Source: Caecitellus pseudoparvulus
Lineage: Eukaryota; Protista; Bigyra: Bicosoecida
Length of the DNA stretch: 64,000 nucleotides
NCBI GenBank assembly: GCA_965644315.1
Contig: CBFFRQ010000057.1
Coordinates: forward strand, 667,018-731,017
Direction: 5' to 3'
Shown here: piece after piece, positions 3,001-53,473 of the stretch
Layout of the letters: every line of letters begins with the position of its first letter
How positions within the stretch are numbered: position 1 is the stretch's first letter
The notes under the pieces: model-generated
Databases searched by the model: none
What the model was told of the DNA's origin: nothing
Seen by the model: the letters and a program-made list of their open reading frames with translations, nothing else
Translations under genes and position numbers: made by a program

Positions 3001-5057
3001 AGGGCGCCAGCCCCAGATCTGGCAGGGAGGGGCCCGATGCACGGCCCACCACTCCCCAGCAGAGGGCCAGCATCACCGCCGACGACTCGGATGATGAGGC
3101 GCTGCCGCCTCCGAGTACATTCCTCGCGGATGTGGCCAGCGGCTCCATCTCTGCGGTGGATGTCGTACCAGGGTGGACGGCCCCCCCCAAAGCCGCTGAC
3201 ATCGTGGCCATGCGCCAGCGTGAGGCCCGGCGCCTGCGCAGCCGGGGCGGAAGCAGGGCTGCAAAAGCGCAGACCAGCCCCAAGATCACCTCCACGGCGC
3301 CGTCACGGGCCTTGGCCATCGCGCCCATGGGCGCAGAACGACAACGCCCCTCCCGTGTTCTGCACCCCGCCCTTGTTCAGAGCATGAAGGCGTCTGTGCG
3401 GCGGGAGCAGACCAAGCAGCACCGACGGGACATGCAGAGCCAGCGGGGGGAGCGGGGGACTGCACAAGCTGACTCCGCTGGTGACCAGGGGCGCACTCTG
3501 GCGCAGCGGGAGGTGCTGGGCGCCCCCACATCCACCATTGAGTTGGGTCCACCCGGCGGCGCACCAGGCCAGCCAGCAGAGGAGGGCGGCGGCGTCTCGC
3601 CCCGATTCACCGTCGCGGGGGCCTCGGCGCTCCTGCACGTAGAGCGCTATGCCGGCGACCTGGAGGCTTTCGGCGGCTCGAAGGATGCGGAGGAGAAGGG
3701 AGGCGCTGGTGCACCGGTGCGCGCTCGTCCCGGCCCCGGGTTTCTCCTGGACGGCCAGGTGGCTGATGTGAACGAAGGTGCGCGGCGCGGGATCGGCGGC
3801 AGCATCCCCTTCTCGGCACCACCGCGTCAGCGCTCCGCCATCGTCAGCCCGTTGAAGGCGGGCGGCAAGGCAGGTGCCTCCCTGTGGTTGTCAGCTGCTG
3901 ACGTCGTTGTGGCTGAGCGCAGCAAGCGGGCCCACCCAGGAGTCTCGGCAGCTGCAGCTGCTGCGACGGGGGACGGTCTGTCAGCGGCCCAGGCGGCGTA
4001 TGTGGGAGAGGGCAAGCGAGCTGGCAAGCGAGCGGGCGCGCGCGTGCCTGGTGACGTGCGTGGCTTCGTGACTCCCCGCAGCGAGGAAGGTGGCCCGCCG
4101 TTGGTGCGTGCAGCCAACAGCGCAGGGGTTGGGCGCAGCCTGCGTGCCCGTGGCACTGCCCCTGCTGGCCGTTCACTGCTGTCAGTGCACCAAAGCACTG
4201 AGCGCACGCTGCGCGCTGCCGCTCATGGAGCCGCCTCAGCGCCACGCCTTCGGGATGTCGAGCAGGGCATGGACGACGAGACAGTGAGTGAGCTGGCCAA
4301 GTACGGCATGTTCACTCTAAAGGACACGTTACAGAGCCGGGTTGTGCCCGCCCTCGGGTCTCGCCGACCGCACTCAAGCAGAGCTGGCCTGTCAGAAGCC
4401 ATGCACGTGGCGCTGGGCGGCAGTGACTCCATGGCCAGTGTGGGCGCTGGAAAGCGCATCAAAGGTGACTCGGACGTCGCCCGGGCCGCAAGTGTCGTGC
4501 GTGGGCTGGAAGTGGGGGACACGGGCGCTGGCCTACGCAGTGCATTGCAGGGCGACAGTGACTCAGACGAGGAGCCTCTGGGCCGCACCCAGGCCGGTGA
4601 TGGTGGCGCACAAACTGCCAAGGCAAGCCACTCCGGCTCCAAGTTCAGCATGGCCGGACCAGCCGGCAGCGTGGCGCCTGGCTTTGCCAGTGCCAAGTCG
4701 TTGGAGGCTGCCCAACTGCTGGAGGCAACGACGCGGGCCGCAGCGTACGTGGCGGGGAAGCGGGGACCAACGACAGGCGGCCTGCCCGATGCAGCCTCGT
4801 CACAAGTTCGAGTGCACGGCGTGACAACGCCTGCTCGCATCAAGGCTTTGCGAGTGCGCGGCGCAGCCACTTCAACTCCGCCTTCCAAGCAAAAGCGCGA
4901 CCCCAACGCAGCCAAGACTGGTGGACGGGAGCAGGCCAGCGCCATGTTCGTTGCCAAGCAGCCTGTGCTGAGTGCTTTTGACAAGCCCATGCCGCGGCCC
5001 AGTCTCAGCACACTCCGCAAGCAGATGCAGGAGGAGCGCCGCAGCGGAGCTAGGTAG
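3..5057 (+). CDS. Large low-complexity Ala/Ser/Pro/Gly-rich hypothetical protein, probably 5'-truncated by the window edge
   Basis: The 1673-aa ORF frame is open from position 3 to TAG 5057. No recognisable domain. Confidence 0.7.
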   Translation, partial: VPAPGENRTSPVPDTSGLVVAAVLRAQAFHAEGGTALAAGELPAEEAPPEAPETGDDEGKDSGGASESKDAGAAAEPGARSESRALPRSVSALSALSGLSSAAPAPRAQAEGEDDLPPPLFGFGMLSLWPAPCDVEVLQHWRSHTSVVFGARAAVGMRITQLAAAVTSAPAGGDEWGSPRPDTPKQRGAQLALPAGAAHEDAVTAAVPAPTPAAVGRGQARRRAAQVLGPALLPLLLSVGGDTDGWSNQASSRKASAALKELLGCLDSLQWTVSGHGFRVEAMGQGWFRVPPAGYGGPFCPRGDLGKRVRVSPLRHLGERGLALGAAYDLSQEAQGEPGSPGSHRRVSTAGAARAVLATISARSLVGTAEQKVESPTAGDGGKRAQGEGGLAALALGALRRPSARAPGLASGRVTLADLGVSEAEARTVPGGRVRRLFDPTPEERIQLLAESLFRRVVVLGGVRMPSSRAGVAPDQASSRQGALPSVVEDAPAREVSKTDSAATHGVPTSHLSQALQGVLARREGEDYDAWFKRANDDPRLSDIWRHRQALAEQRSLQRRRGRPVDGEVVVAPSCLQAAKLASKGGLSQRGFLPLTSIFHLCCAPPALQGQPDASGVEDRPAIGQGDAAAVDGGDNVDLPARRLARIASAGLMSVSEVTDEGAVAAALLQKGRRTQELADVRRPDQLRSLRPPSVGRFRPHEAPVVPTPGKAAAGGSGPASTAAGQRAHARHLVPSALPDTRTAQTLVQILVNEVEGEEEVKGSGRGLQFPRKEPLLVASSTTSTLAALLKRDARADAARSEQVRAILPSAMVRRFPTGTQLQGPVPEGTLIKAAKAARRAEAAASREALAALMGVQTQPVMDSRLNSGAPVVAAEAAMVGGAVRFPPTALSLHRPEDRPPPPSRMHTSATSLGSGVPALQATMSAHQALVPSAAAQDASRPRGLVSPLCMPGPSTTSLGAGDSLGAASSASFLRVPPEAGCRYGMAGSEADVAAEEWLQGASPRSGREGPDARPTTPQQRASITADDSDDEALPPPSTFLADVASGSISAVDVVPGWTAPPKAADIVAMRQREARRLRSRGGSRAAKAQTSPKITSTAPSRALAIAPMGAERQRPSRVLHPALVQSMKASVRREQTKQHRRDMQSQRGERGTAQADSAGDQGRTLAQREVLGAPTSTIELGPPGGAPGQPAEEGGGVSPRFTVAGASALLHVERYAGDLEAFGGSKDAEEKGGAGAPVRARPGPGFLLDGQVADVNEGARRGIGGSIPFSAPPRQRSAIVSPLKAGGKAGASLWLSAADVVVAERSKRAHPGVSAAAAAATGDGLSAAQAAYVGEGKRAGKRAGARVPGDVRGFVTPRSEEGGPPLVRAANSAGVGRSLRARGTAPAGRSLLSVHQSTERTLRAAAHGAASAPRLRDVEQGMDDETVSELAKYGMFTLKDTLQSRVVPALGSRRPHSSRAGLSEAMHVALGGSDSMASVGAGKRIKGDSDVARAASVVRGLEVGDTGAGLRSALQGDSDSDEEPLGRTQAGDGGAQTAKASHSGSKFSMAGPAGSVAPGFASAKSLEAAQLLEATTRAAAYVAGKRGPTTGGLPDAASSQVRVHGVTTPARIKALRVRGAATSTPPSKQKRDPNAAKTGGREQASAMFVAKQPVLSAFDKPMPRPSLSTLRKQMQEERRSGAR

Positions 5058-10410: not shown

Positions 10411-13400
10411 TCACTGTTGTGCTGCTGCGGCGGCGCCCTGCGCTGCGTAGGTGCTCTTAATCTGCTGCAGGCGCTTGGGGTCTCCTAGGCCCCACATCTC
10501 CAGCACCACCAGCACCTTGTCGCGCGGCGTGCGGTAGAGGCTGGCAAAGGCAGGGCGGGACAAGCACACCAGTGCCATGCGCCCGACAGCCTCTGTGAAG
10601 GCAGCAAACGTCAATGCAGTGGTTTTGTCCTTGGTGCTGGCCTTGGCACCGGGCTGCATGAGGCCGTGCGTGACTGCGGTGGCTGCGAAGATGCTCTTCA
10701 CTTCACTTTTGGAGGTGAAGGTAGGCACCACCATGTAATCCTTGCACAGGCGCAGGAAGGCCGACGCCGTCATGCCCGCACTGGGGCCACTGCCACAGTC
10801 AGCGTAGAACTTGAACAACTTGATGAGGGGCTTGGTGAAGTTGTCGAACAGCGCCATAACCTCTGGCTGGAACAGCTCGGCAGGGGCGTCCCCAGCGTCA
10901 GCAGCGCCGCCAGGCGCAGGTGCTGCCGGGGCAGGCGAGGGCCCCGACGCCGCTGCTGGCGCGCGTGTGGGCGGAGAGGACAGAGTGGGCACGCCGCCAG
11001 GCGTGACGGCGGTGGATGCCGGGGCACTGCCAGCAGCGCCTGCCGGGCCGCCGCCACGACGAGGAGGAGGAGACGCCGACGCAGCTGAGGCCAGCGCGTG
11101 TGCGTCCTGCTTCACCTTCTCGCCCAACTGGGTCATGGTGGCAAGCTGGGATGAGACCAACTCCCGGTCACGGTCGATGGACGCTCGCATGGCCTGCAGC
11201 TCCTCCATCTGCCGTGCGAAGTCTGCCTTGGCTGCCTCCAGCTCAGCCCGCTCCGCTGCCAGCGCGGCGCTGCCCTCGGACGTGTGAGACGCCGAAGTAG
11301 CAGTCAGGTGGGAGGGGGGGGGAGGGGGCGCGCCGGCCTCCTGGCTGGTGGGCGGTGGAGGGGGCACAGGTGTGGTGGAGGTGGCCGGGGCCGCTTGCGT
11401 CGTTGCCGTGCTGGCCCACGTGCTGGCAGCGTCGAAGCTGTGGCTGGCTGTGAACCCCTGGGATGCGGACTGCACAGTGCTGCTGGGTGTGTGTGCTGCC
11501 GAGAAGGAGCCGACGCTGCTGGGTGCAGGGCCCCCTGTCAGGCCTGTCCCCGCGAGAGCAGCGGTCAGTGCCTGCGCCCTGGCGAGGGTGGCCTGCATCT
11601 CCGGCGACAGCGCGGACACGGCAGCGGACACGGGGGGCGACGCCACGGGCTCCGGAGCCTGTGCCGCTGCTGGGCCCATGGCGGCGTCCATGTCCTCCTT
11701 GGTGAACAGGACCTGGGGCAGGAAGGGCGAGCCTGCGATGGGGCGCGCGTAGAAGAAGCCCTCCGCGTGCATGTTCACCTCCACTTCGATTTGGGGTGCG
11801 ATGCCACGCTGCGCCTTCTGCACATCCTCTGGCCCCAGCTGCACCTCGTACGTGACAGTGTAGCAGCCGTTGCCGTGGTCCACGATGTCGTACGGGACGG
11901 CCGGGCCATGCACCAGAATCTCAAACTGGTCGCCGCCTTCGTTGCGAGGGCTGTCGAATTGATCCCGCGCAACCACTGTGAAGGTGTTCTTCTGCCCCAG
12001 CCGGGCGAACTTAGCACCCTCACCCGTCACGACGCAGTGCTTGGGCGCCGTCGGGGCAGGCCGCACTTCCGGCAGGAAGGGCGAGCCGAAGATGTGCTGC
12101 CCCTTGTACTTCACACACAGCTCGAAGGTGCCAGCTTTGGGAGGCACGTAGTTGACCTGCAGCGTGCCGTCTCCGACATCCTCCGGGTGCAGCTCGATCT
12201 CCAGGTCCGCGTTGGACAGGGACACAGTAAAGGGCTCCTCGTCGTCCCCGTCGGCAGGCAGCGGGTTCCCGTACTCGTCGAAGTTCTGCTGCGGCTGCGG
12301 CATGGCCTCCTCGTCAGGCTGGATCGTGAAGGTAGCCTGCTCGCCCAGCACAGCCTCTGACAATCCTGGCCCCCAGGCACGGTGCCGCATAGCGAGGTCC
12401 TTGTGCGCAGCTGCCTTGTCGGCCTCCTCTTTCTTGTGGGCCTCCAATGCAGCCATACTACTCAATGGGTCCATGTGGGGATTGAAACCCGCGTGGCCTT
12501 GCTCTGGGGAGGGGGCGCGGGCACCGTGAGTGTGGCAAGCCGGCGCGAAACGCCCGTGCACATGAAACGCAACTTACGCTGTTGCCGTGCGCGCTGCCGC
12601 GCAGCGCGCTTCTCTGGATCGTGCACATCCTTGTGGGCCTGGATCAAGTACTGGATGGTTTCCACCCACCTGTCAGCCTCATCCTCATTCTCACACGCCA
12701 GGACCATCTCCTCCTCACCAGACGGCCTCACGGTGAAGGTGTGCACGATGTCTTTGTTCGTGTGCTGGCCCTTGGAGTCGCCCGCCTCCACCTCGGTCAG
12801 CTCATCGATCTCGATCTCGGCTCTAGGGCGGTAGTCTTCCTCCTTGTCAAAGTACTGCAGTTGGCTTCCCACAACCCGCAGCAGCTTGTCAGCCCACCTC
12901 TTCCTCGTGAACCGGGAGCGAGACTTCTTCTTCACCCACCCTTCCCGGATTGCCAGCTTCGTTTCATCCACTTCTGGTTGCATGCTGTCCTCATAGTCAT
13001 CATACATGCCGTCCCCACCCTGATACCCGTCACCGCCGCCCCACCCAGCCCCGGACGCGTCTGCCTCTACTCCGTACCCACCAGCGCCTCCTTGCTGCTG
13101 CGGCGCCACGCGCGCCATCAGCAGCCTGCTGCGCGTGGACTCGATCGTGTCCTCCGTCTCCGCCAGCTTGTCTTGCAGCATGCGCATGTTCCAGGCACGC
13201 TGCCTGTCCACACGGTACGGCATACCGTACCGCTTGGGCGACGAGCCGTAGGCTCCGGTGCCAGCTCCCGCCAAAGGGCCGCGCCGCGGACCCGGGCTGC
13301 CGAAACGCCCTGACCCCGCGCCACCACTCTGCCCGAAGCGGCTGGGGCTGTCCCCGAATGCCCCTGCAGCATCATGATACCCATCATGATCTGCATACTG

Positions 13401-48317: not shown

Positions 48318-51300
48318 ATGCCAAGAGTCAACAAAAAGGCGCAAAGAAGGGACAGGTACCAGCAGCTGGCGAAGGAGCAGGTGCGTGGGTTGCGGAAGTT
48401 GTTCATGTTCCACCCTGCCGCCACCCAACCCTTTCCCCGTACTCGTGCCTGCTCAGGGATACAGAGCTCGGTCAGCATTCAAACTCATCCAACTCAACAA
48501 GAAGTATGACTTCCTTTCCAGTGCTCAATGCGTCATCGACCTGTGCGCTGCCCCAGGCGGATGGCTGCAGGTGGCGCAGAAGTTTTGCCCCATGTCGGCA
48601 CGCATCATCGGAGTGGACCTGAACCCCATCAGGCCTATCCACAACGTGCTAACCCACCAAGCTGACATCACCACTGTTCAGTGCCGTCAGCTCCTGCGTC
48701 GTGACATGGGCAGCGCGAAAGCTGACGTTGTCCTTCACGATGGTGCTCCGAACGTCGGCGCTGACTGGCGATCTGACGCATACCAGCAGTCCATCTTGAC
48801 ACTGCACTCTGTGAAGCTGGCGACAGAATTCCTTCGTCCTGGCGGCCTCTTCATCACGAAGGTGTTTCGTTCAGCAGACTACACATCGCTGCTGTGGGTC
48901 TTCAACCAGCTCTTCTCCAAGGTGGAGGCGACCAAGCCTCACTCCTCACGAAATGCCTCTGCTGAGATCTTCGTTGTATGCCAAGGCTACTATGCCCCAT
49001 CCAAGATCGACGCCCGCATGCTGGACCCAAACCACGTTTTCAAGGATGATGTCGATGTGCACGCTGCAGCCGCTGGCAGCTCTGGTGGAGACAAGCCCTT
49101 GTCGGTCATGCACCCCAAAGGCCTCATGCAGCGCCGCAGCCGTAATGGCTATAAGCCTGAACGGGGCCTTCTCCAGCTGAATGAGGTTCCTGTGCGGGAC
49201 TTTTTCCTCGCCACGGACCCGGTTGAGGTGATTTCCGATGCCACTGCTTTGGTGTTCACAGGCGAGTCTGAACAGTACCTTTCGCATCCTTCCACAACCA
49301 GTGAAATTAAGGCCCTGTGTGAGGACCTGAAAGTCATCGGCAGGGCAGACTTTAAGCTGCTCCTCAAGTGGCGCATGCGCATCAACAAGGAGGAAGTGGC
49401 GGCGAAGCGAGCAGCCGCAGCAGCAGCTGGTGGTGCCGACCAGGCTGGGCACGGCAAAGACTCAGCCACTGGCGGAGGAAGCGAGTCTGACAGTGATGAA
49501 GACGAGGAGCTTGCTCAAGCCCTGACGTCAGAGGCCAAGCGCAAGCGGGCGGAGCGCAAGCGCGAGGCCAAGCGCCGACAGCGGGCCATCAAGAAGCACA
49601 TGTATGGCATGACAGGCCAGAGCGTGGACATTGATGCCATGAATGCGGAAGTGCCACGGTTCAGTCTGGCAGCCATCACCGGCAAGCTTTCGAACCCGGC
49701 AGTTCTAGATGAGATAGCAGATGTGGACTTGGACACCATGGATGCCACAGACCAAGCTGGAATCGATGCGATTTATGAAGGCGAGGCCCCTTTGAACCCC
49801 TTGGCAGAGAAGCCTGATGGTGACGCCAGCGATGCTAGCGAAGGAGTGGGCGAGGAAGAGTACTTGGCGGCCCTGGAGGGCGCTCTAGACCGCCACTACG
49901 AGGAGTTCAAAGAGAAGCGTCGTTCTCGAGACGCAGCCGCTGCGAAGGCCGCCATCGAAGGTCGTGTGTCCAAAGGTGTGAAGCTGACACGCCGCGGCCG
50001 CATGGAGGCAGAAGCAGCAGCGAAGGTGGCACAGGCTGAGGCAAAACTTGATTACAAGCACCAAGAGTATTTGAAGCTGCTCGCCGGCATGCGGGCGAAG
50101 GACAGCAGGCCTGTTGGAGGGAGTGACGACGAGTCATCCGGCGACGAAGGCGGCGCCAGCGACAACTCGGACGGGTTCTGGGATGCACACAAACAAGACC
50201 GCACCGTGGACAGCGACGAAGAAGGGGACGCTATCATTCCGTCAGGCAGTTCTGCTTCCGCTGCGGCTGCCCGCTGGTTCAGCAACCCTGCAGTCTCAGG
50301 CGTGCTCCCAGTTGGGACTGTGGAGTTCAACACTGAATCCCGTGGGACAAAGCGTGCGCGTGGAGGCGACTCGGATGATGATGGGTTTGAGGACGGCAGT
50401 GATGACGACGGCCTCCCTGATTTCATGCGGGATCTGCCCAAGTCTGAGCGAGAGCTTCGCAAGGAGCGCCTGAAGCGGGCGAGGGAAAAGGAAGAGTACC
50501 TCGCAAAGAAGCGCACCGCGCATGATGACAGCAAGCTGCAAATTGTGAAGGGGCCTGCAGCTTCATACGAGTCTGAAGGCGATGAATCGGCAGACGATGA
50601 AGGCAAGGTGTCCCAAGCCACGAAGGATTTGATTAAGGCTGGCATGGGCGCTGCTCTGACCGGCAAATCTGTTTCGAGCACAACAGGAAAGGCTGCCGGC
50701 CCAAGTGAGGGTGGCTTTGAGACTGTGCCTCGCTTGGGGGATGCAGCAGATGATGATGATCCACGGGACCAAGAGTACGACTCTGACACCCACGCAGAAA
50801 TCCTCGCTTTGGGAAAGCTCATGCGCCAGCACACCACTGCGAAGGCGCTTGTGGATGCCAGCTACAACCGGTACTCATTTGATGATGGGGCCTTGCCCTC
50901 ATGGTTTGCTGCTGACGAAGCCAAGCACTTCCGGCCACAGCTTCCCGTGTCAAAGGCAGATGTGGAGCAGATTAAGACACGCTTCCGCGACATTGCCGCC
51001 CGGCCCATTCACAAGGTCATGGAGGCGAGGGCGAGGAAGAAGCACCGTTCCACAGCAAAGCTGGCGAAGGCACGTCGTGCTGCAGAGGCGATTGCAGCGG
51101 ATGAAACCATGGGTCACACCGAGAAGATGAAAGCCATGGCACGCACTTATCGAGGCACCCAAAAAGAAAAACGGGAGAAGGTTTATGTGGTGGCAAGCAA
51201 AGGAGGGAACTCGTCCCTTGCCGTGCGAGGTGCCCGCAAACGCGGTGCAGCGGTGAAGCAAGTTGACTCACGACTCAGGGCAGACACTCGCGGGGAGAAG

Positions 51301-51351
51301 AACGCAAGGTTCCGCTCGAAGAAGCGGGCAGCGAAACGCCGTCGCAAGTAA
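48318..51351 (+). CDS. SPB1: Pre-rRNA 2'-O-methyltransferase Spb1/FTSJ3; intron 48381-48456
   Basis: RDRYQQLAKEQ|GYRARSAFKLIQLN, DLCAAPGGWLQVA, VLHDGAPNVG, SRNASAEIFVVC and the C-terminal RPI.KVMEARARKK..KQVDSRLRAD motifs. Confidence 0.96.
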
Positions 51352-51414
51352 AACATAGCTGGATATTGTTCTGGTGAGTGGCTGGTGTGGCTGGTGTCGT
51401 GTGCCGCGCCGTGT

Positions 51415-51588
51415 GCGACTGCTTGCCACAGTGCTGGGCTGCCCCCCGGGGCTGTAGCCTGAGAAACTGCCAAAGCGGTCGAAGATCAAACGTGTATTGC
51501 ACGGACTAATATAGGAAACTGTCCACGCTCTAAGCAGCGAAAGCTGTGTGCACCCGTGTGTGGCCGGGGTCGAACGTCCGTAACATAT
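51415..51588 (+). ncRNA. Box H/ACA snoRNA, snR34/U65 (SNORA65)-like, copy 1
   Basis: Hairpin 1 (CGACTGCTT/AAGCGGTCG), box H AGATCA 51483-51488, hairpin 2 (ACGGAC/GTCCGT), ACA 51583-51585 + 3 nt. Pockets are antisense to the conserved LSU sequences UGGC-UU-GUGGCAG and UUCGAUGUCGGC-UC-UUCCUAU. Confidence 0.82.
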
Positions 51589-51724
51589 CACACGTCACGT
51601 GTCATGTCGTGCGCAGGAGTCGGACAGCGAGAGGGGGAGAGAGCATGTGCAGGCCGGGGAGCGATGCAGTGGAGTGGGCGTCTGCTGTGACGGTGAGTGG
51701 ATGGTGTCGTGTGCCGCGCCGTGT

Positions 51725-51898
51725 GCGACTGCTTGCCACAGTGCTGGGCTGCCCCCCGGGGCTGTAGCCTGAGAAACTGCCAAAGCGGTCGAAGATCAAA
51801 CGTGTATTGCACGGACTAATATAGGAAACTGTCCACGCTCTAAGCAGCGAAAGCTGTGTGCACCCGTGTGTGGCCGGGGTCGAACGTCCGTAACATAT
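51725..51898 (+). ncRNA. Box H/ACA snoRNA, snR34/U65-like, copy 2
   Basis: Same core as copy 1, offset by 310 bp. Confidence 0.82.
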
Positions 51899-52034
51899 CA
51901 CACGTCACGTGTCGTGTCGTGCGCAGGAGTCGGACAGCGAGGGGGGGAGAGAGCATGTGCAGGCCGGGGAGCGAAGCAGTGGAGTGGGCGTCTGCTGTGA
52001 CGGTGAGTGGCTGGTGTCGTGTGCCGCGCCGTGC

Positions 52035-52208
52035 GCGACTGCTTGCCACAGTGCTGGGCTGCCCCCCGGGGCTGTAGCCTGAGAAACTGCCAAAGCGGTC
52101 GAAGATCAAACGTGTATTGCACGGACTAATATAGGAAACTGTCCACGCTCTAAGCAGCGAAAGCTGTGTGCACCCGTGTGTGGCCGGGGTCGAACGTCCG
52201 TAACATAT
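52035..52208 (+). ncRNA. Box H/ACA snoRNA, snR34/U65-like, copy 3
   Basis: Same core as copy 1, offset by 620 bp. Confidence 0.82.
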
Positions 52209-52387
52209 CACACGTCACGTGTCGTGTCGTGCGCAGGAGTCGGACAGCGAGGGGGGGGAGAGCATGTGCAGGCCGGGGAGCGATGCAGTGGAGTGGACTT
52301 CCTGCGCAACCAATGTTTGGGGGTCTTTGGCAATGCACTACCGGGTGCTTTTTTTCTGTGCTGCAAGTCTTCTTGCTGGTAGGCCAA

Positions 52388-52422
52388 CGAACACGTGACC
52401 GTCAAATTTCTCGAACACGTGA
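52388..52422. promoter_or_regulatory. Paired E-box (CACGTG) direct repeat upstream of cytochrome b5 reductase
   Basis: CGAACACGTGA occurs at 52388 and 52412, 50-85 bp before the ATG. CCAAT lies near 52311. Confidence 0.35.
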
Positions 52423-52472
52423 TGCAGAATCTTTCGGTGTCCTCTTCACGCTGGTAAGGCAACGTTTGCACC

Positions 52473-53473
52473 ATGTTGCGCTCAGCAGCCCGCATGGCGG
52501 CTCCGGCCGCAGTCATGGCCAGCCTGGCTTGGACCAGCAGCGCCAGCGCAGCTGACGACGAAGACCTGTTCATCGTCAAGACAGCTCTGAACCCCAAGCA
52601 GTGGAAGGACTTTGAGTGCATTGAAAAGAAACAGCTGACTCACAACACTGCGCGACTTCGCTTTGCACTGCCTCCTCACCACGAGCTGGGCATGACCACC
52701 GCCTCGTGCCTGGTGGCTCGTGCGGACATTGATGGTGTGTCAGCCTCCGCCAGCCCCCAAGCACTGTGCGCGAGTCCATGGATCTCGCTTTTCCTTACGC
52801 AGGGAAAACTGTCGTGAGACCCTACACCCCCACTTCGCGCGAGCACGACAAGGGCTTCTTTGACCTGGTCGTGAAGACGTATCCCGAGGGCAAACTGAGC
52901 AAGTAGGTGTAGCTGGCGGCATGAGTACCTTCCAGACGCAAGCCGCTTTTCGCCTGCTGCCACCTCAGGCACATTTACGGGCTGGACCAGGGCGATTTCC
53001 TGGAATTCAAGGGACCCTTTAAGAAGCTGGACATCTCTTCAAACTCGAAGAAGGCCATCGGCATGATCGCCGGCGGCACGGGGATCACGCCCATGCTACA
53101 AGTGATCCAGAAGCTGCTGGACGACCCCCGGGACAAGACCGAGCTGCGTTTGCTGTACGCGAATAACACCGAAGATGACATTATTCTGAAGAATCAGCTG
53201 GACGCCCTTGCCTTGGTGCACCCTCGCTTCAAGGTGTACTACACGGTGACCGAGCCCAGCGAGGGCTGGACCGGCTTCACCGGCTTCGTGGACGCTGACA
53301 AAGTGGCAGCGACGCTCCCCCCCCCCAGCGATGACCACTTGGTGCTGGTGTGTGGCCCCCCTCCAATGGTCAAGGCAATGAGTGGAGGGAAGGCCAAGGA
53401 CAAGTCGCAAGGCCCGCTGGAGGGGCTGCTGAAGGAGATGAAGTACACGTCTGAGCAAGTGTTCAAGTTCTGA
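52473..53473 (+). CDS. NADH-cytochrome b5 reductase (Mcr1-like, mitochondrial-type N-terminus); introns 52735-52802 and 52903-52968
   Basis: [32 protein letters not shown]|[21 protein letters not shown] and EQVFKF motifs. Confidence 0.93.

Follow-up and report, generated by a model that had tools for sequence, protein, structure and literature searches.

The window analyzed here, i.e., the whole stretch of 64,000 nt of Caecitellus pseudoparvulus DNA, carries on its forward strand a two-exon coding gene directly followed by a tandemly repeated, non-coding extension. Upstream of the repeat, the gene is assigned as SPB1 on the basis of its Pfam domains, with matches of the open reading frame (ORF) to FtsJ (1.8e-49), DUF3381 (4.1e-32), and Spb1_C (7.5e-51). 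Yeast Spb1 is a 2'-O-methyltransferase acting on the A loop of the large-subunit (LSU) rRNA. A word-based protein search, queried with the single ORF piece in which exon 1 is not joined to exon 2, returned more than 6000 homologues, many of them labelled SPB1 by their source. The search assigns the organism to the stramenopiles; the best named matches are those of Cafeteria and oomycetes, and the closest matches are marine sequences. The conserved N-terminal Spb1 segment starts on a short first exon and resumes in frame at 48457, behind an intron. The mechanically defined ORF starts within this intron, at a GTG at 48385, its first 24 codons being intron sequence, and this false N-terminus is carried by prokaryote-style public gene calls (e.g., P0001, 988 aa).

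Contigs of four runs were aligned to the locus. Run X1 comes from a labelled organism, runs X2 and X4 are metatranscriptomes of seawater, and run X15 is DNA-like. Labelling of the runs is uncertain (“RNA?”, may be DNA), and the three RNA-type runs X1, X2, and X4, of poly(A)-biased or total RNA, span two studies. Combining sequence reading and these alignments, the following features were defined.

48318 to 48380, forward strand: SPB1 coding exon 1 (63 nt, 21 codons), read from the sequence, with an ATG start and a GTGCGT donor directly after it.
48381 to 48456, forward strand: intron of the SPB1 coding region, 76 nt, with GT and AG ends; the FtsJ domain starts directly after its acceptor.
48457 to 51351, forward strand: SPB1 coding exon 2, with the Pfam domains FtsJ, DUF3381, and Spb1_C and a TAA stop at 51349 to 51351.
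51352 to 51373, forward strand: start of the 3' UTR, 22 nt lying directly before the first donor; contigs of X1, X2, and X4 follow the coding sequence to 51372 or 51373 and then continue at an exon start.
51374 to 51616, forward strand: 3' UTR intron A, 243 nt, from GTGAGT to GCGCAG; joints lead from 51373 to 51927 and from 51373 to 52237.
51416 to 51588, forward strand: candidate H/ACA snoRNA copy 1, 173 nt, of the snR34/U65 type, by a weak Rfam match, a two-hairpin fold, its pockets, and a score of 205.6 bits with our own model R1.
51617 to 51692, forward strand: non-coding 3' UTR exon, 76 nt; an X2 contig covers 51633 to 51693, and a joint leads from 51692 to 51927.
51693 to 51926, forward strand: 3' UTR intron B, 234 nt, by the X2 joint, a 234-nt skip with GT and AG ends.
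51726 to 51898, forward strand: candidate H/ACA snoRNA copy 2, identical to copy 1.
51927 to 52002, forward strand: non-coding 3' UTR exon, 76 nt; in X4 contig 18, 51926 to 52001 is joined to 52236 to 52265.
52003 to 52236, forward strand: 3' UTR intron C, 234 nt; it is removed in X4, by the joint from 52002 to 52237, and kept in contigs of X1 and X2.
52036 to 52208, forward strand: candidate H/ACA snoRNA copy 3, identical to copy 1.
52237 to 52302, forward strand: last 3' UTR exon, with 52302 as an upper bound for its end; the RNA contigs listed reach 52280.

The next gene downstream (52419 to 53473, forward strand) has its ATG at 52473 and a 68-nt intron at 52735 to 52802, and encodes a predicted oxidoreductase of the cytochrome-b5/ferredoxin-reductase type (NAD_binding_1, 1.1e-31). 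RNA contigs of this gene start at 52419 to 52431, approximately 120 nt past the end of the SPB1 transcript. In the spacer between both genes, the contigs of X15 fork at 52377 to 52406, one end (depth 33) matching the window and the other (depth 16) carrying 27 unlike letters, which points to another allele or to structural variation in this spacer.

Analysis of the extension by Tandem Repeats Finder revealed a 310-bp unit present 2.9 times with 98% matches (51387 to 52296). A preliminary description of this DNA, made from the letters alone, had read the SPB1 3' UTR as a duplicated cassette of one intron and one exon, and the 310-nt period, together with a relative carrying at least two copies (see below), bears this out. 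All coordinates given there were found to be right upon re-reading of the sequence: the GTGAGT donors start at 51374, 51693, and 52003, the GCGCAG acceptors end at 51616, 51926, and 52236, and each acceptor lies 28 nt past the predicted end of a snoRNA, i.e., the ACA box plus 3 nt, at 51588, 51898, and 52208. Introns of about 235 to 245 nt, separated by 76-nt exons, had been proposed, and the measured lengths are 243, 234, and 234 nt for the introns and 76 nt for the exons. Likewise, the proposed length of about 70 nt for ordinary introns of this genome agrees with the 65 to 76 nt measured for introns of UPF1 and Mago, for that of the downstream reductase gene, and for the 5' intron of SPB1; the snoRNA-bearing introns are thus about 3.4 times as long. 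Repeats of the type GTGGCTGGT are found in the window just after the 3' UTR donor, and intron A holds one extra 9-nt copy (243 vs 234 nt).

Since the array might have been created by the assembler, its copy number was derived from word depth in X15. A contig of the repeat body had a depth of 139 compared with 40 to 46 in the flanks, corresponding to ~3.2 copies, and the contig leading from the exon end into the donor had a depth of 98 (~2.3 copies), as expected for a junction occurring twice. X15 may be the source sample of the window itself, so that these depths represent read-level support for the assembly rather than a second strain. The triplication is real and no assembly artefact; the single copy that read depth could have exposed was not seen. 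Comparison of the three units showed six variable sites, all of them located in the 137 nt outside the snoRNA, while the snoRNA copies are identical. By our own arithmetic, the chance of all six sites missing the snoRNA is ~0.008. Unequal crossover or gene conversion has probably raised the number of cassettes and kept them uniform. The recurrence of the splice motifs is a consequence of the 310-bp repeat and hence provides no independent evidence for splicing.

Such evidence came from the RNA-type runs, in which four joints with GT and AG ends were detected. Two of them are 234-nt skips, from 51692 to 51927 (X2) and from 52002 to 52237 (X4). The other two start at the first donor, namely a 553-nt skip from 51373 to 51927 (X1 and X2) and an 863-nt skip from 51373 to 52237 (X4). 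Of the three junctions put forward in the preliminary description, the second and third were recovered as predicted, whereas the first appeared with 51373 joined to the near-identical exon copies at 51927 and 52237 instead of to 51617. The lengths of the longer skips equal 243 + 310 and 243 + 620 nt, and could reflect removal of intron A with the joint placed on another near-identical exon copy, or true exon skipping. Each snoRNA is bracketed by joints seen in these runs, is wholly intronic, and lies on the host strand, one per intron. The SPB1 coding contig crosses the first junction in all three RNA-type runs, the coding region being physically joined to spliced 3' UTR exons. Because joints from exon to exon exist, at least two introns are removed. 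Contigs cannot separate the near-identical exon copies, and the joints represent evidence per junction rather than for one molecule free of all three introns.

The runs also define the extent of the transcript. No RNA-type run has cover in the bin 52303 to 52363, and there is next to none up to ~52418, a stretch covered by X15; the SPB1 mRNA appears to end by ~52300. Introns are likewise barely covered or uncovered in the RNA-type runs; in X4, cover is zero over the intron bodies and the spacer, with both genes covered. Intron C is retained in record 1 of X1 and record 14 of X2, both running unbroken through 51976 to 52265, so that splicing is incomplete or precursor is abundant in these two runs.

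Given that the labelling of the runs leaves room for DNA among them, and that a tandem repeat is prone to changes in copy number in strains otherwise differing by single-base changes, we considered whether the joints represent DNA differences between strains (deletions or repeat number) rather than RNA splicing. This appears very improbable. None of the skip lengths of 234, 553, and 863 nt is a multiple of the 310-nt period, and a change in repeat number is therefore no explanation for the joints, which in addition start with GT and end with AG exactly at the predicted sites. None of them was found in the DNA-type run X15, where both the intron bodies and the intergenic spacer are covered, and the missing cover of intron bodies and spacer in X4, despite both genes being covered, speaks against this reading as well. 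One transcription unit spans SPB1 and the cassettes, with introns spliced. The proposal that the SPB1 3' UTR serves as a spliced snoRNA host thereby gained transcript evidence, its GT and AG joints appearing in all three RNA-type runs.

The identity of the intronic RNA was approached by family, fold, and target. At gathering thresholds, no Rfam family matched between 45000 and 58000. A permissive Rfam search placed snoR2/U65 (RF01292) at full length on all three copies, with 18.5 bits and E = 1.2 for 51416 to 51588, which is far below the gathering score of 44. The minimum-energy fold consists of two hairpins in the copy of the window as well as in that of the relative. Along the RNA, a first hairpin is followed by a hinge with AGAUCA, corresponding to the H box consensus ANANNA and located 67 nt into the snoRNA, a second hairpin, and an ACA box (51583 to 51585 in copy 1); the respective boxes of the relative are AAAGCA and ACA. 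Fold energy was not unusual for the composition in the window copy (z = -1.12; relative, z = -2.74). In view of this weak signal, covariation and targets were used as support for a functional RNA instead. The consensus fold of 42 pairs contains six stem pairs with compensatory changes between the two species, while the guide segments are invariant.

Targets were searched in the LSU rRNA of the same genome (L004, 1501 to 4673) by scanning for two-part pairing whose spacing to the boxes is as expected. With the 5' pocket, 4+7 bp form around U2670 (L004, 4170), 14 nt from the H box, and with the 3' pocket, 5+7 bp around U2724 (L004, 4224), 14 nt from the ACA box. Both residues are 54 nt apart, matching the spacing in yeast and human, and by alignment to the 23S rRNA they correspond to E. 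coli U2457 and U2511. Assuming that the offset between yeast and E. coli numbering is 369 nt in this region (Gm2922 being G2553), we take U2670 and U2724 to be the equivalents of yeast Psi2826 and Psi2880. These are the targets of yeast snR34 (PMC11121408). In a naive pairing scan, the snR34 sites were not the top matches, coming second with hairpin 1 and sharing places three to five with hairpin 2. Accordingly, family alignment, geometry, and conservation of the guide segments were taken together for the assignment. This combination supports an intronic H/ACA guide of the snR34/U65 type for two residues near the peptidyl-transferase centre, in line with the three guides for this region suggested in the preliminary description. 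Pseudouridylation of LSU U2670 and U2724 is predicted from base pairing.

Only the three copies at this locus were detected in the 30.6-Mb genome, using both a DNA search and our own covariance model, with the next match at E = 0.67. Since the locus is the sole detectable source of the guide, guide output would be tied to SPB1 transcription.

These observations were combined into a model of guide production that we regard as likely, in which an SPB1 pre-mRNA with three cassettes has its introns spliced, three guides are released, and U2670 and U2724 are targeted. SPB1 and the cassettes are transcribed as one pre-mRNA reaching approximately 950 nt beyond the stop. This extension comprises three tandem cassettes, each with a 234- to 243-nt intron and a 76-nt non-coding exon, the last exon being shorter, and each intron holds one two-hairpin H/ACA snoRNA, a presumed ortholog of yeast snR34, human U65, and plant snoR2. 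H/ACA proteins would assemble on the nascent intron. After excision, debranching and trimming to the H/ACA particle may yield up to three identical guides per transcript, which would direct two pseudouridines beside the peptidyl-transferase centre. The snoRNA ends 28 nt from the acceptor, which places it near the branch site, and its 3' trimming should therefore require debranching.

In plants, yeast, and trypanosomatids, the processing of tandem snoRNA arrays by endonucleases is a familiar route. Accordingly, the array might be cut by a nuclease from unspliced read-through RNA, or form a separate transcription unit, with splicing as a mere by-product. The X1 and X2 contigs retaining intron C demonstrate that unspliced, snoRNA-bearing RNA is present, which is in favour of this view. 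Against it, the SPB1 coding contig runs across the first junction in every RNA-type run, and no separate start was seen among the RNA contigs. In addition, the arrangement of one snoRNA per intron and intact GT and AG sites are kept in a relative whose exon sequence has diverged fully. The retention of splice sites despite exon divergence speaks for selection acting on these sites as such. We consider both variants quite improbable and retain release of the guides from spliced introns as the preferred explanation.

The relative in question has an SPB1 61% identical to that of the window (L006, and a longer version of the locus, L013, recovered by a metagenome pattern scan). Its upstream neighbour is 52% identical to that of the window, and thus the locus is syntenic. 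The same scan returned a second candidate, L014, which was rejected as a chance match in a bacterial-looking ORF, L013 being the true locus. In L013, the SPB1 stop (13012 to 13014) is followed after 11 nt by a GTGAGT at 13026, and the acceptor AG lies at 13286. The intron in between contains a (TG)n run (13046 to 13070) upstream of a 173-nt snoRNA homologue. Next come a 75-nt exon (13287 to 13361), a further GTGAGT, and another snoRNA copy, the latter being 100% identical over the 121 nt preceding the contig end. The cassette of the relative is consequently present in at least two copies.

Comparison of both species with shuffled controls revealed conservation of the snoRNA (z = 6.6) and none of the spacer exon (z = -0.4; 51617 to 51692 vs L013, 13287 to 13361). 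Near-identical copies within each species, combined with unrelated exons between them, indicate independent recent amplification or continuing homogenisation. The length of the spacer exon is nearly constant (76 vs 75 nt) despite the unrelated sequence; a lower limit on exon size or a need for a certain spacing could account for this.

Further loci were inspected for the same arrangement. For a strain with 99% identity (L008), the contig breaks off inside the repeat, 92 nt past the stop. In a third lineage (L007), a GTACGT is located 22 nt past the SPB1 stop, followed by a TG-rich run (3630 to 3645) and then the contig end, which is suggestive of a similar arrangement. Three independent public contigs, L006, L007, and L008, all stop 92 to 180 nt past the SPB1 stop, as would be expected if short-read assemblies break at the tandem cassette. 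A permissive Rfam search of the loci of six relatives found no snoRNA, the copy of L006, which is cut by the contig end, being missed as well. Likewise, a motif scan near SPB1 in L009 to L012 (42 to 45% identity, including Cafeteria roenbergensis) revealed no such snoRNA. Judged from these loci, the arrangement seems to be restricted to a less inclusive clade, although the distant ones may carry a copy that has moved or diverged.

In respect to nonsense-mediated decay (NMD), the positions of the exon junctions merit attention. In the spliced mRNA, they are located 22, 98, and 174 nt past the stop, the second and third exceeding the 50 to 55 nt used as NMD criterion. Proteins of NMD and the exon-junction complex appear to be encoded in the genome, i.e., UPF1 (zinc domain, 127 bits), an SMG5-7-like protein (EST1_DNA_bind, 91 bits), and Mago (three exons); a match to Smg4_UPF3 is weak (26 bits, UPF3-like). 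Domain searches of the genome for Upf2 and Btz were blank, which does not equal absence. On this gene content, a lack of NMD in the organism would be unlikely.

A mainly regulatory role of the spliced 3' UTR may therefore be considered, in which junctions at distances above 50 nt from the stop expose the mRNA to NMD and thereby set the balance between Spb1 protein and guide RNA. It would extend the production of guides from spliced introns rather than replace it. [quoted passage not shown] For these human hosts, it has been suggested that NMD makes the output of snoRNA independent of that of the host (PMC4233243, PMC5238794). On the other hand, spliced SPB1 mRNA is abundant enough to be assembled in three runs, Upf2 and Btz domains were not found (which, again, does not equal absence), and exon-junction-dependent NMD is itself putative in this lineage. 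In sum, we hold such regulation to be unlikely. A more far-reaching version would see the cassette as a conserved dosage device, with exons of 75 to 76 nt directing the mRNA to NMD and crossover tuning the number of guides, so that the ratio of methyltransferase to guide is adjusted from one promoter; this we consider more doubtful still.

Among known systems, the closest precedent is the intron cluster in the 3' UTR of Drosophila mfl/Nop60B, the gene of a pseudouridine synthase (dyskerin), which contains four DmSnR60 and two snm60 copies, one per intron (PMC1821038). Both loci share a gene for an rRNA-modification enzyme with duplicated snoRNA copies in 3' UTR introns, one copy each. As in the present case, repeated duplication gave rise to the fly cluster, and conservation between species is confined to its snoRNA parts. 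The fly snoRNAs, however, are box C/D (DmSnR60, in four isoforms) plus two snm60 RNAs, have diverged, and reside in alternative extended 3' UTRs, whereas the locus described here carries three identical H/ACA copies in what is apparently the only 3' UTR of the gene. Furthermore, the host is a methyltransferase gene instead of a pseudouridine synthase gene, the organism is a stramenopile, and the array appears to be the sole source of its guide.

With snR34 of yeast, U65/SNORA65 of human, and snoR2 of plants (RF01292), the RNA shares the predicted two-hairpin H/ACA architecture and the proposed division of labour between the 5' pocket, at the equivalent of Psi2826, and the 3' pocket, at that of Psi2880, both in domain V. 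It differs from them in its three tandem intronic copies and in its sequence, the divergence of which keeps the match below the Rfam gathering score. Yeast snR34 is an independent gene. Intronic snoRNAs in ribosome-biogenesis genes are common in fungi, e.g., snR191 in NOG2 and snR59 in RPL7 (PMC8476143). Here too, protein and snoRNA are co-transcribed and serve large-subunit maturation, and the intron is kept for the snoRNA; those fungal introns are located in the coding region and are single-copy, while the present ones follow the stop and are tandemly amplified. Human GAS5/SNHG hosts likewise combine one snoRNA per intron with short, poorly conserved exons and junctions downstream of the stop (PMC4233243, PMC5238794). 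In contrast to the present locus, these hosts are mostly non-coding or contain short unconserved ORFs and are NMD targets; the product of SPB1 is a full-length protein, essential in yeast, and NMD of the SPB1 mRNA is only putative.

Most work on the biogenesis of intron-encoded snoRNAs concerns animals, fungi, and plants, and a stramenopile case with transcript evidence can now be added. The layout of the fly dyskerin gene, i.e., an enzyme gene with amplified snoRNA introns in the 3' UTR, recurs independently, here in the apparently only 3' UTR of the gene. For genome annotation, the 3' UTR exons and snoRNAs of such loci will escape gene callers, and short-read assemblies break at the array. 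At the level of the ribosome, one promoter would serve two sets of modifications around the peptidyl-transferase centre, Um2921/Gm2922 of Spb1 and Psi2826/Psi2880 of snR34 in yeast numbering. Both sets interact genetically in yeast (PMC11121408). Finally, several constitutive 3' UTR introns on a gene that is essential in yeast may provide a natural test case for exon-junction-dependent NMD in this lineage.
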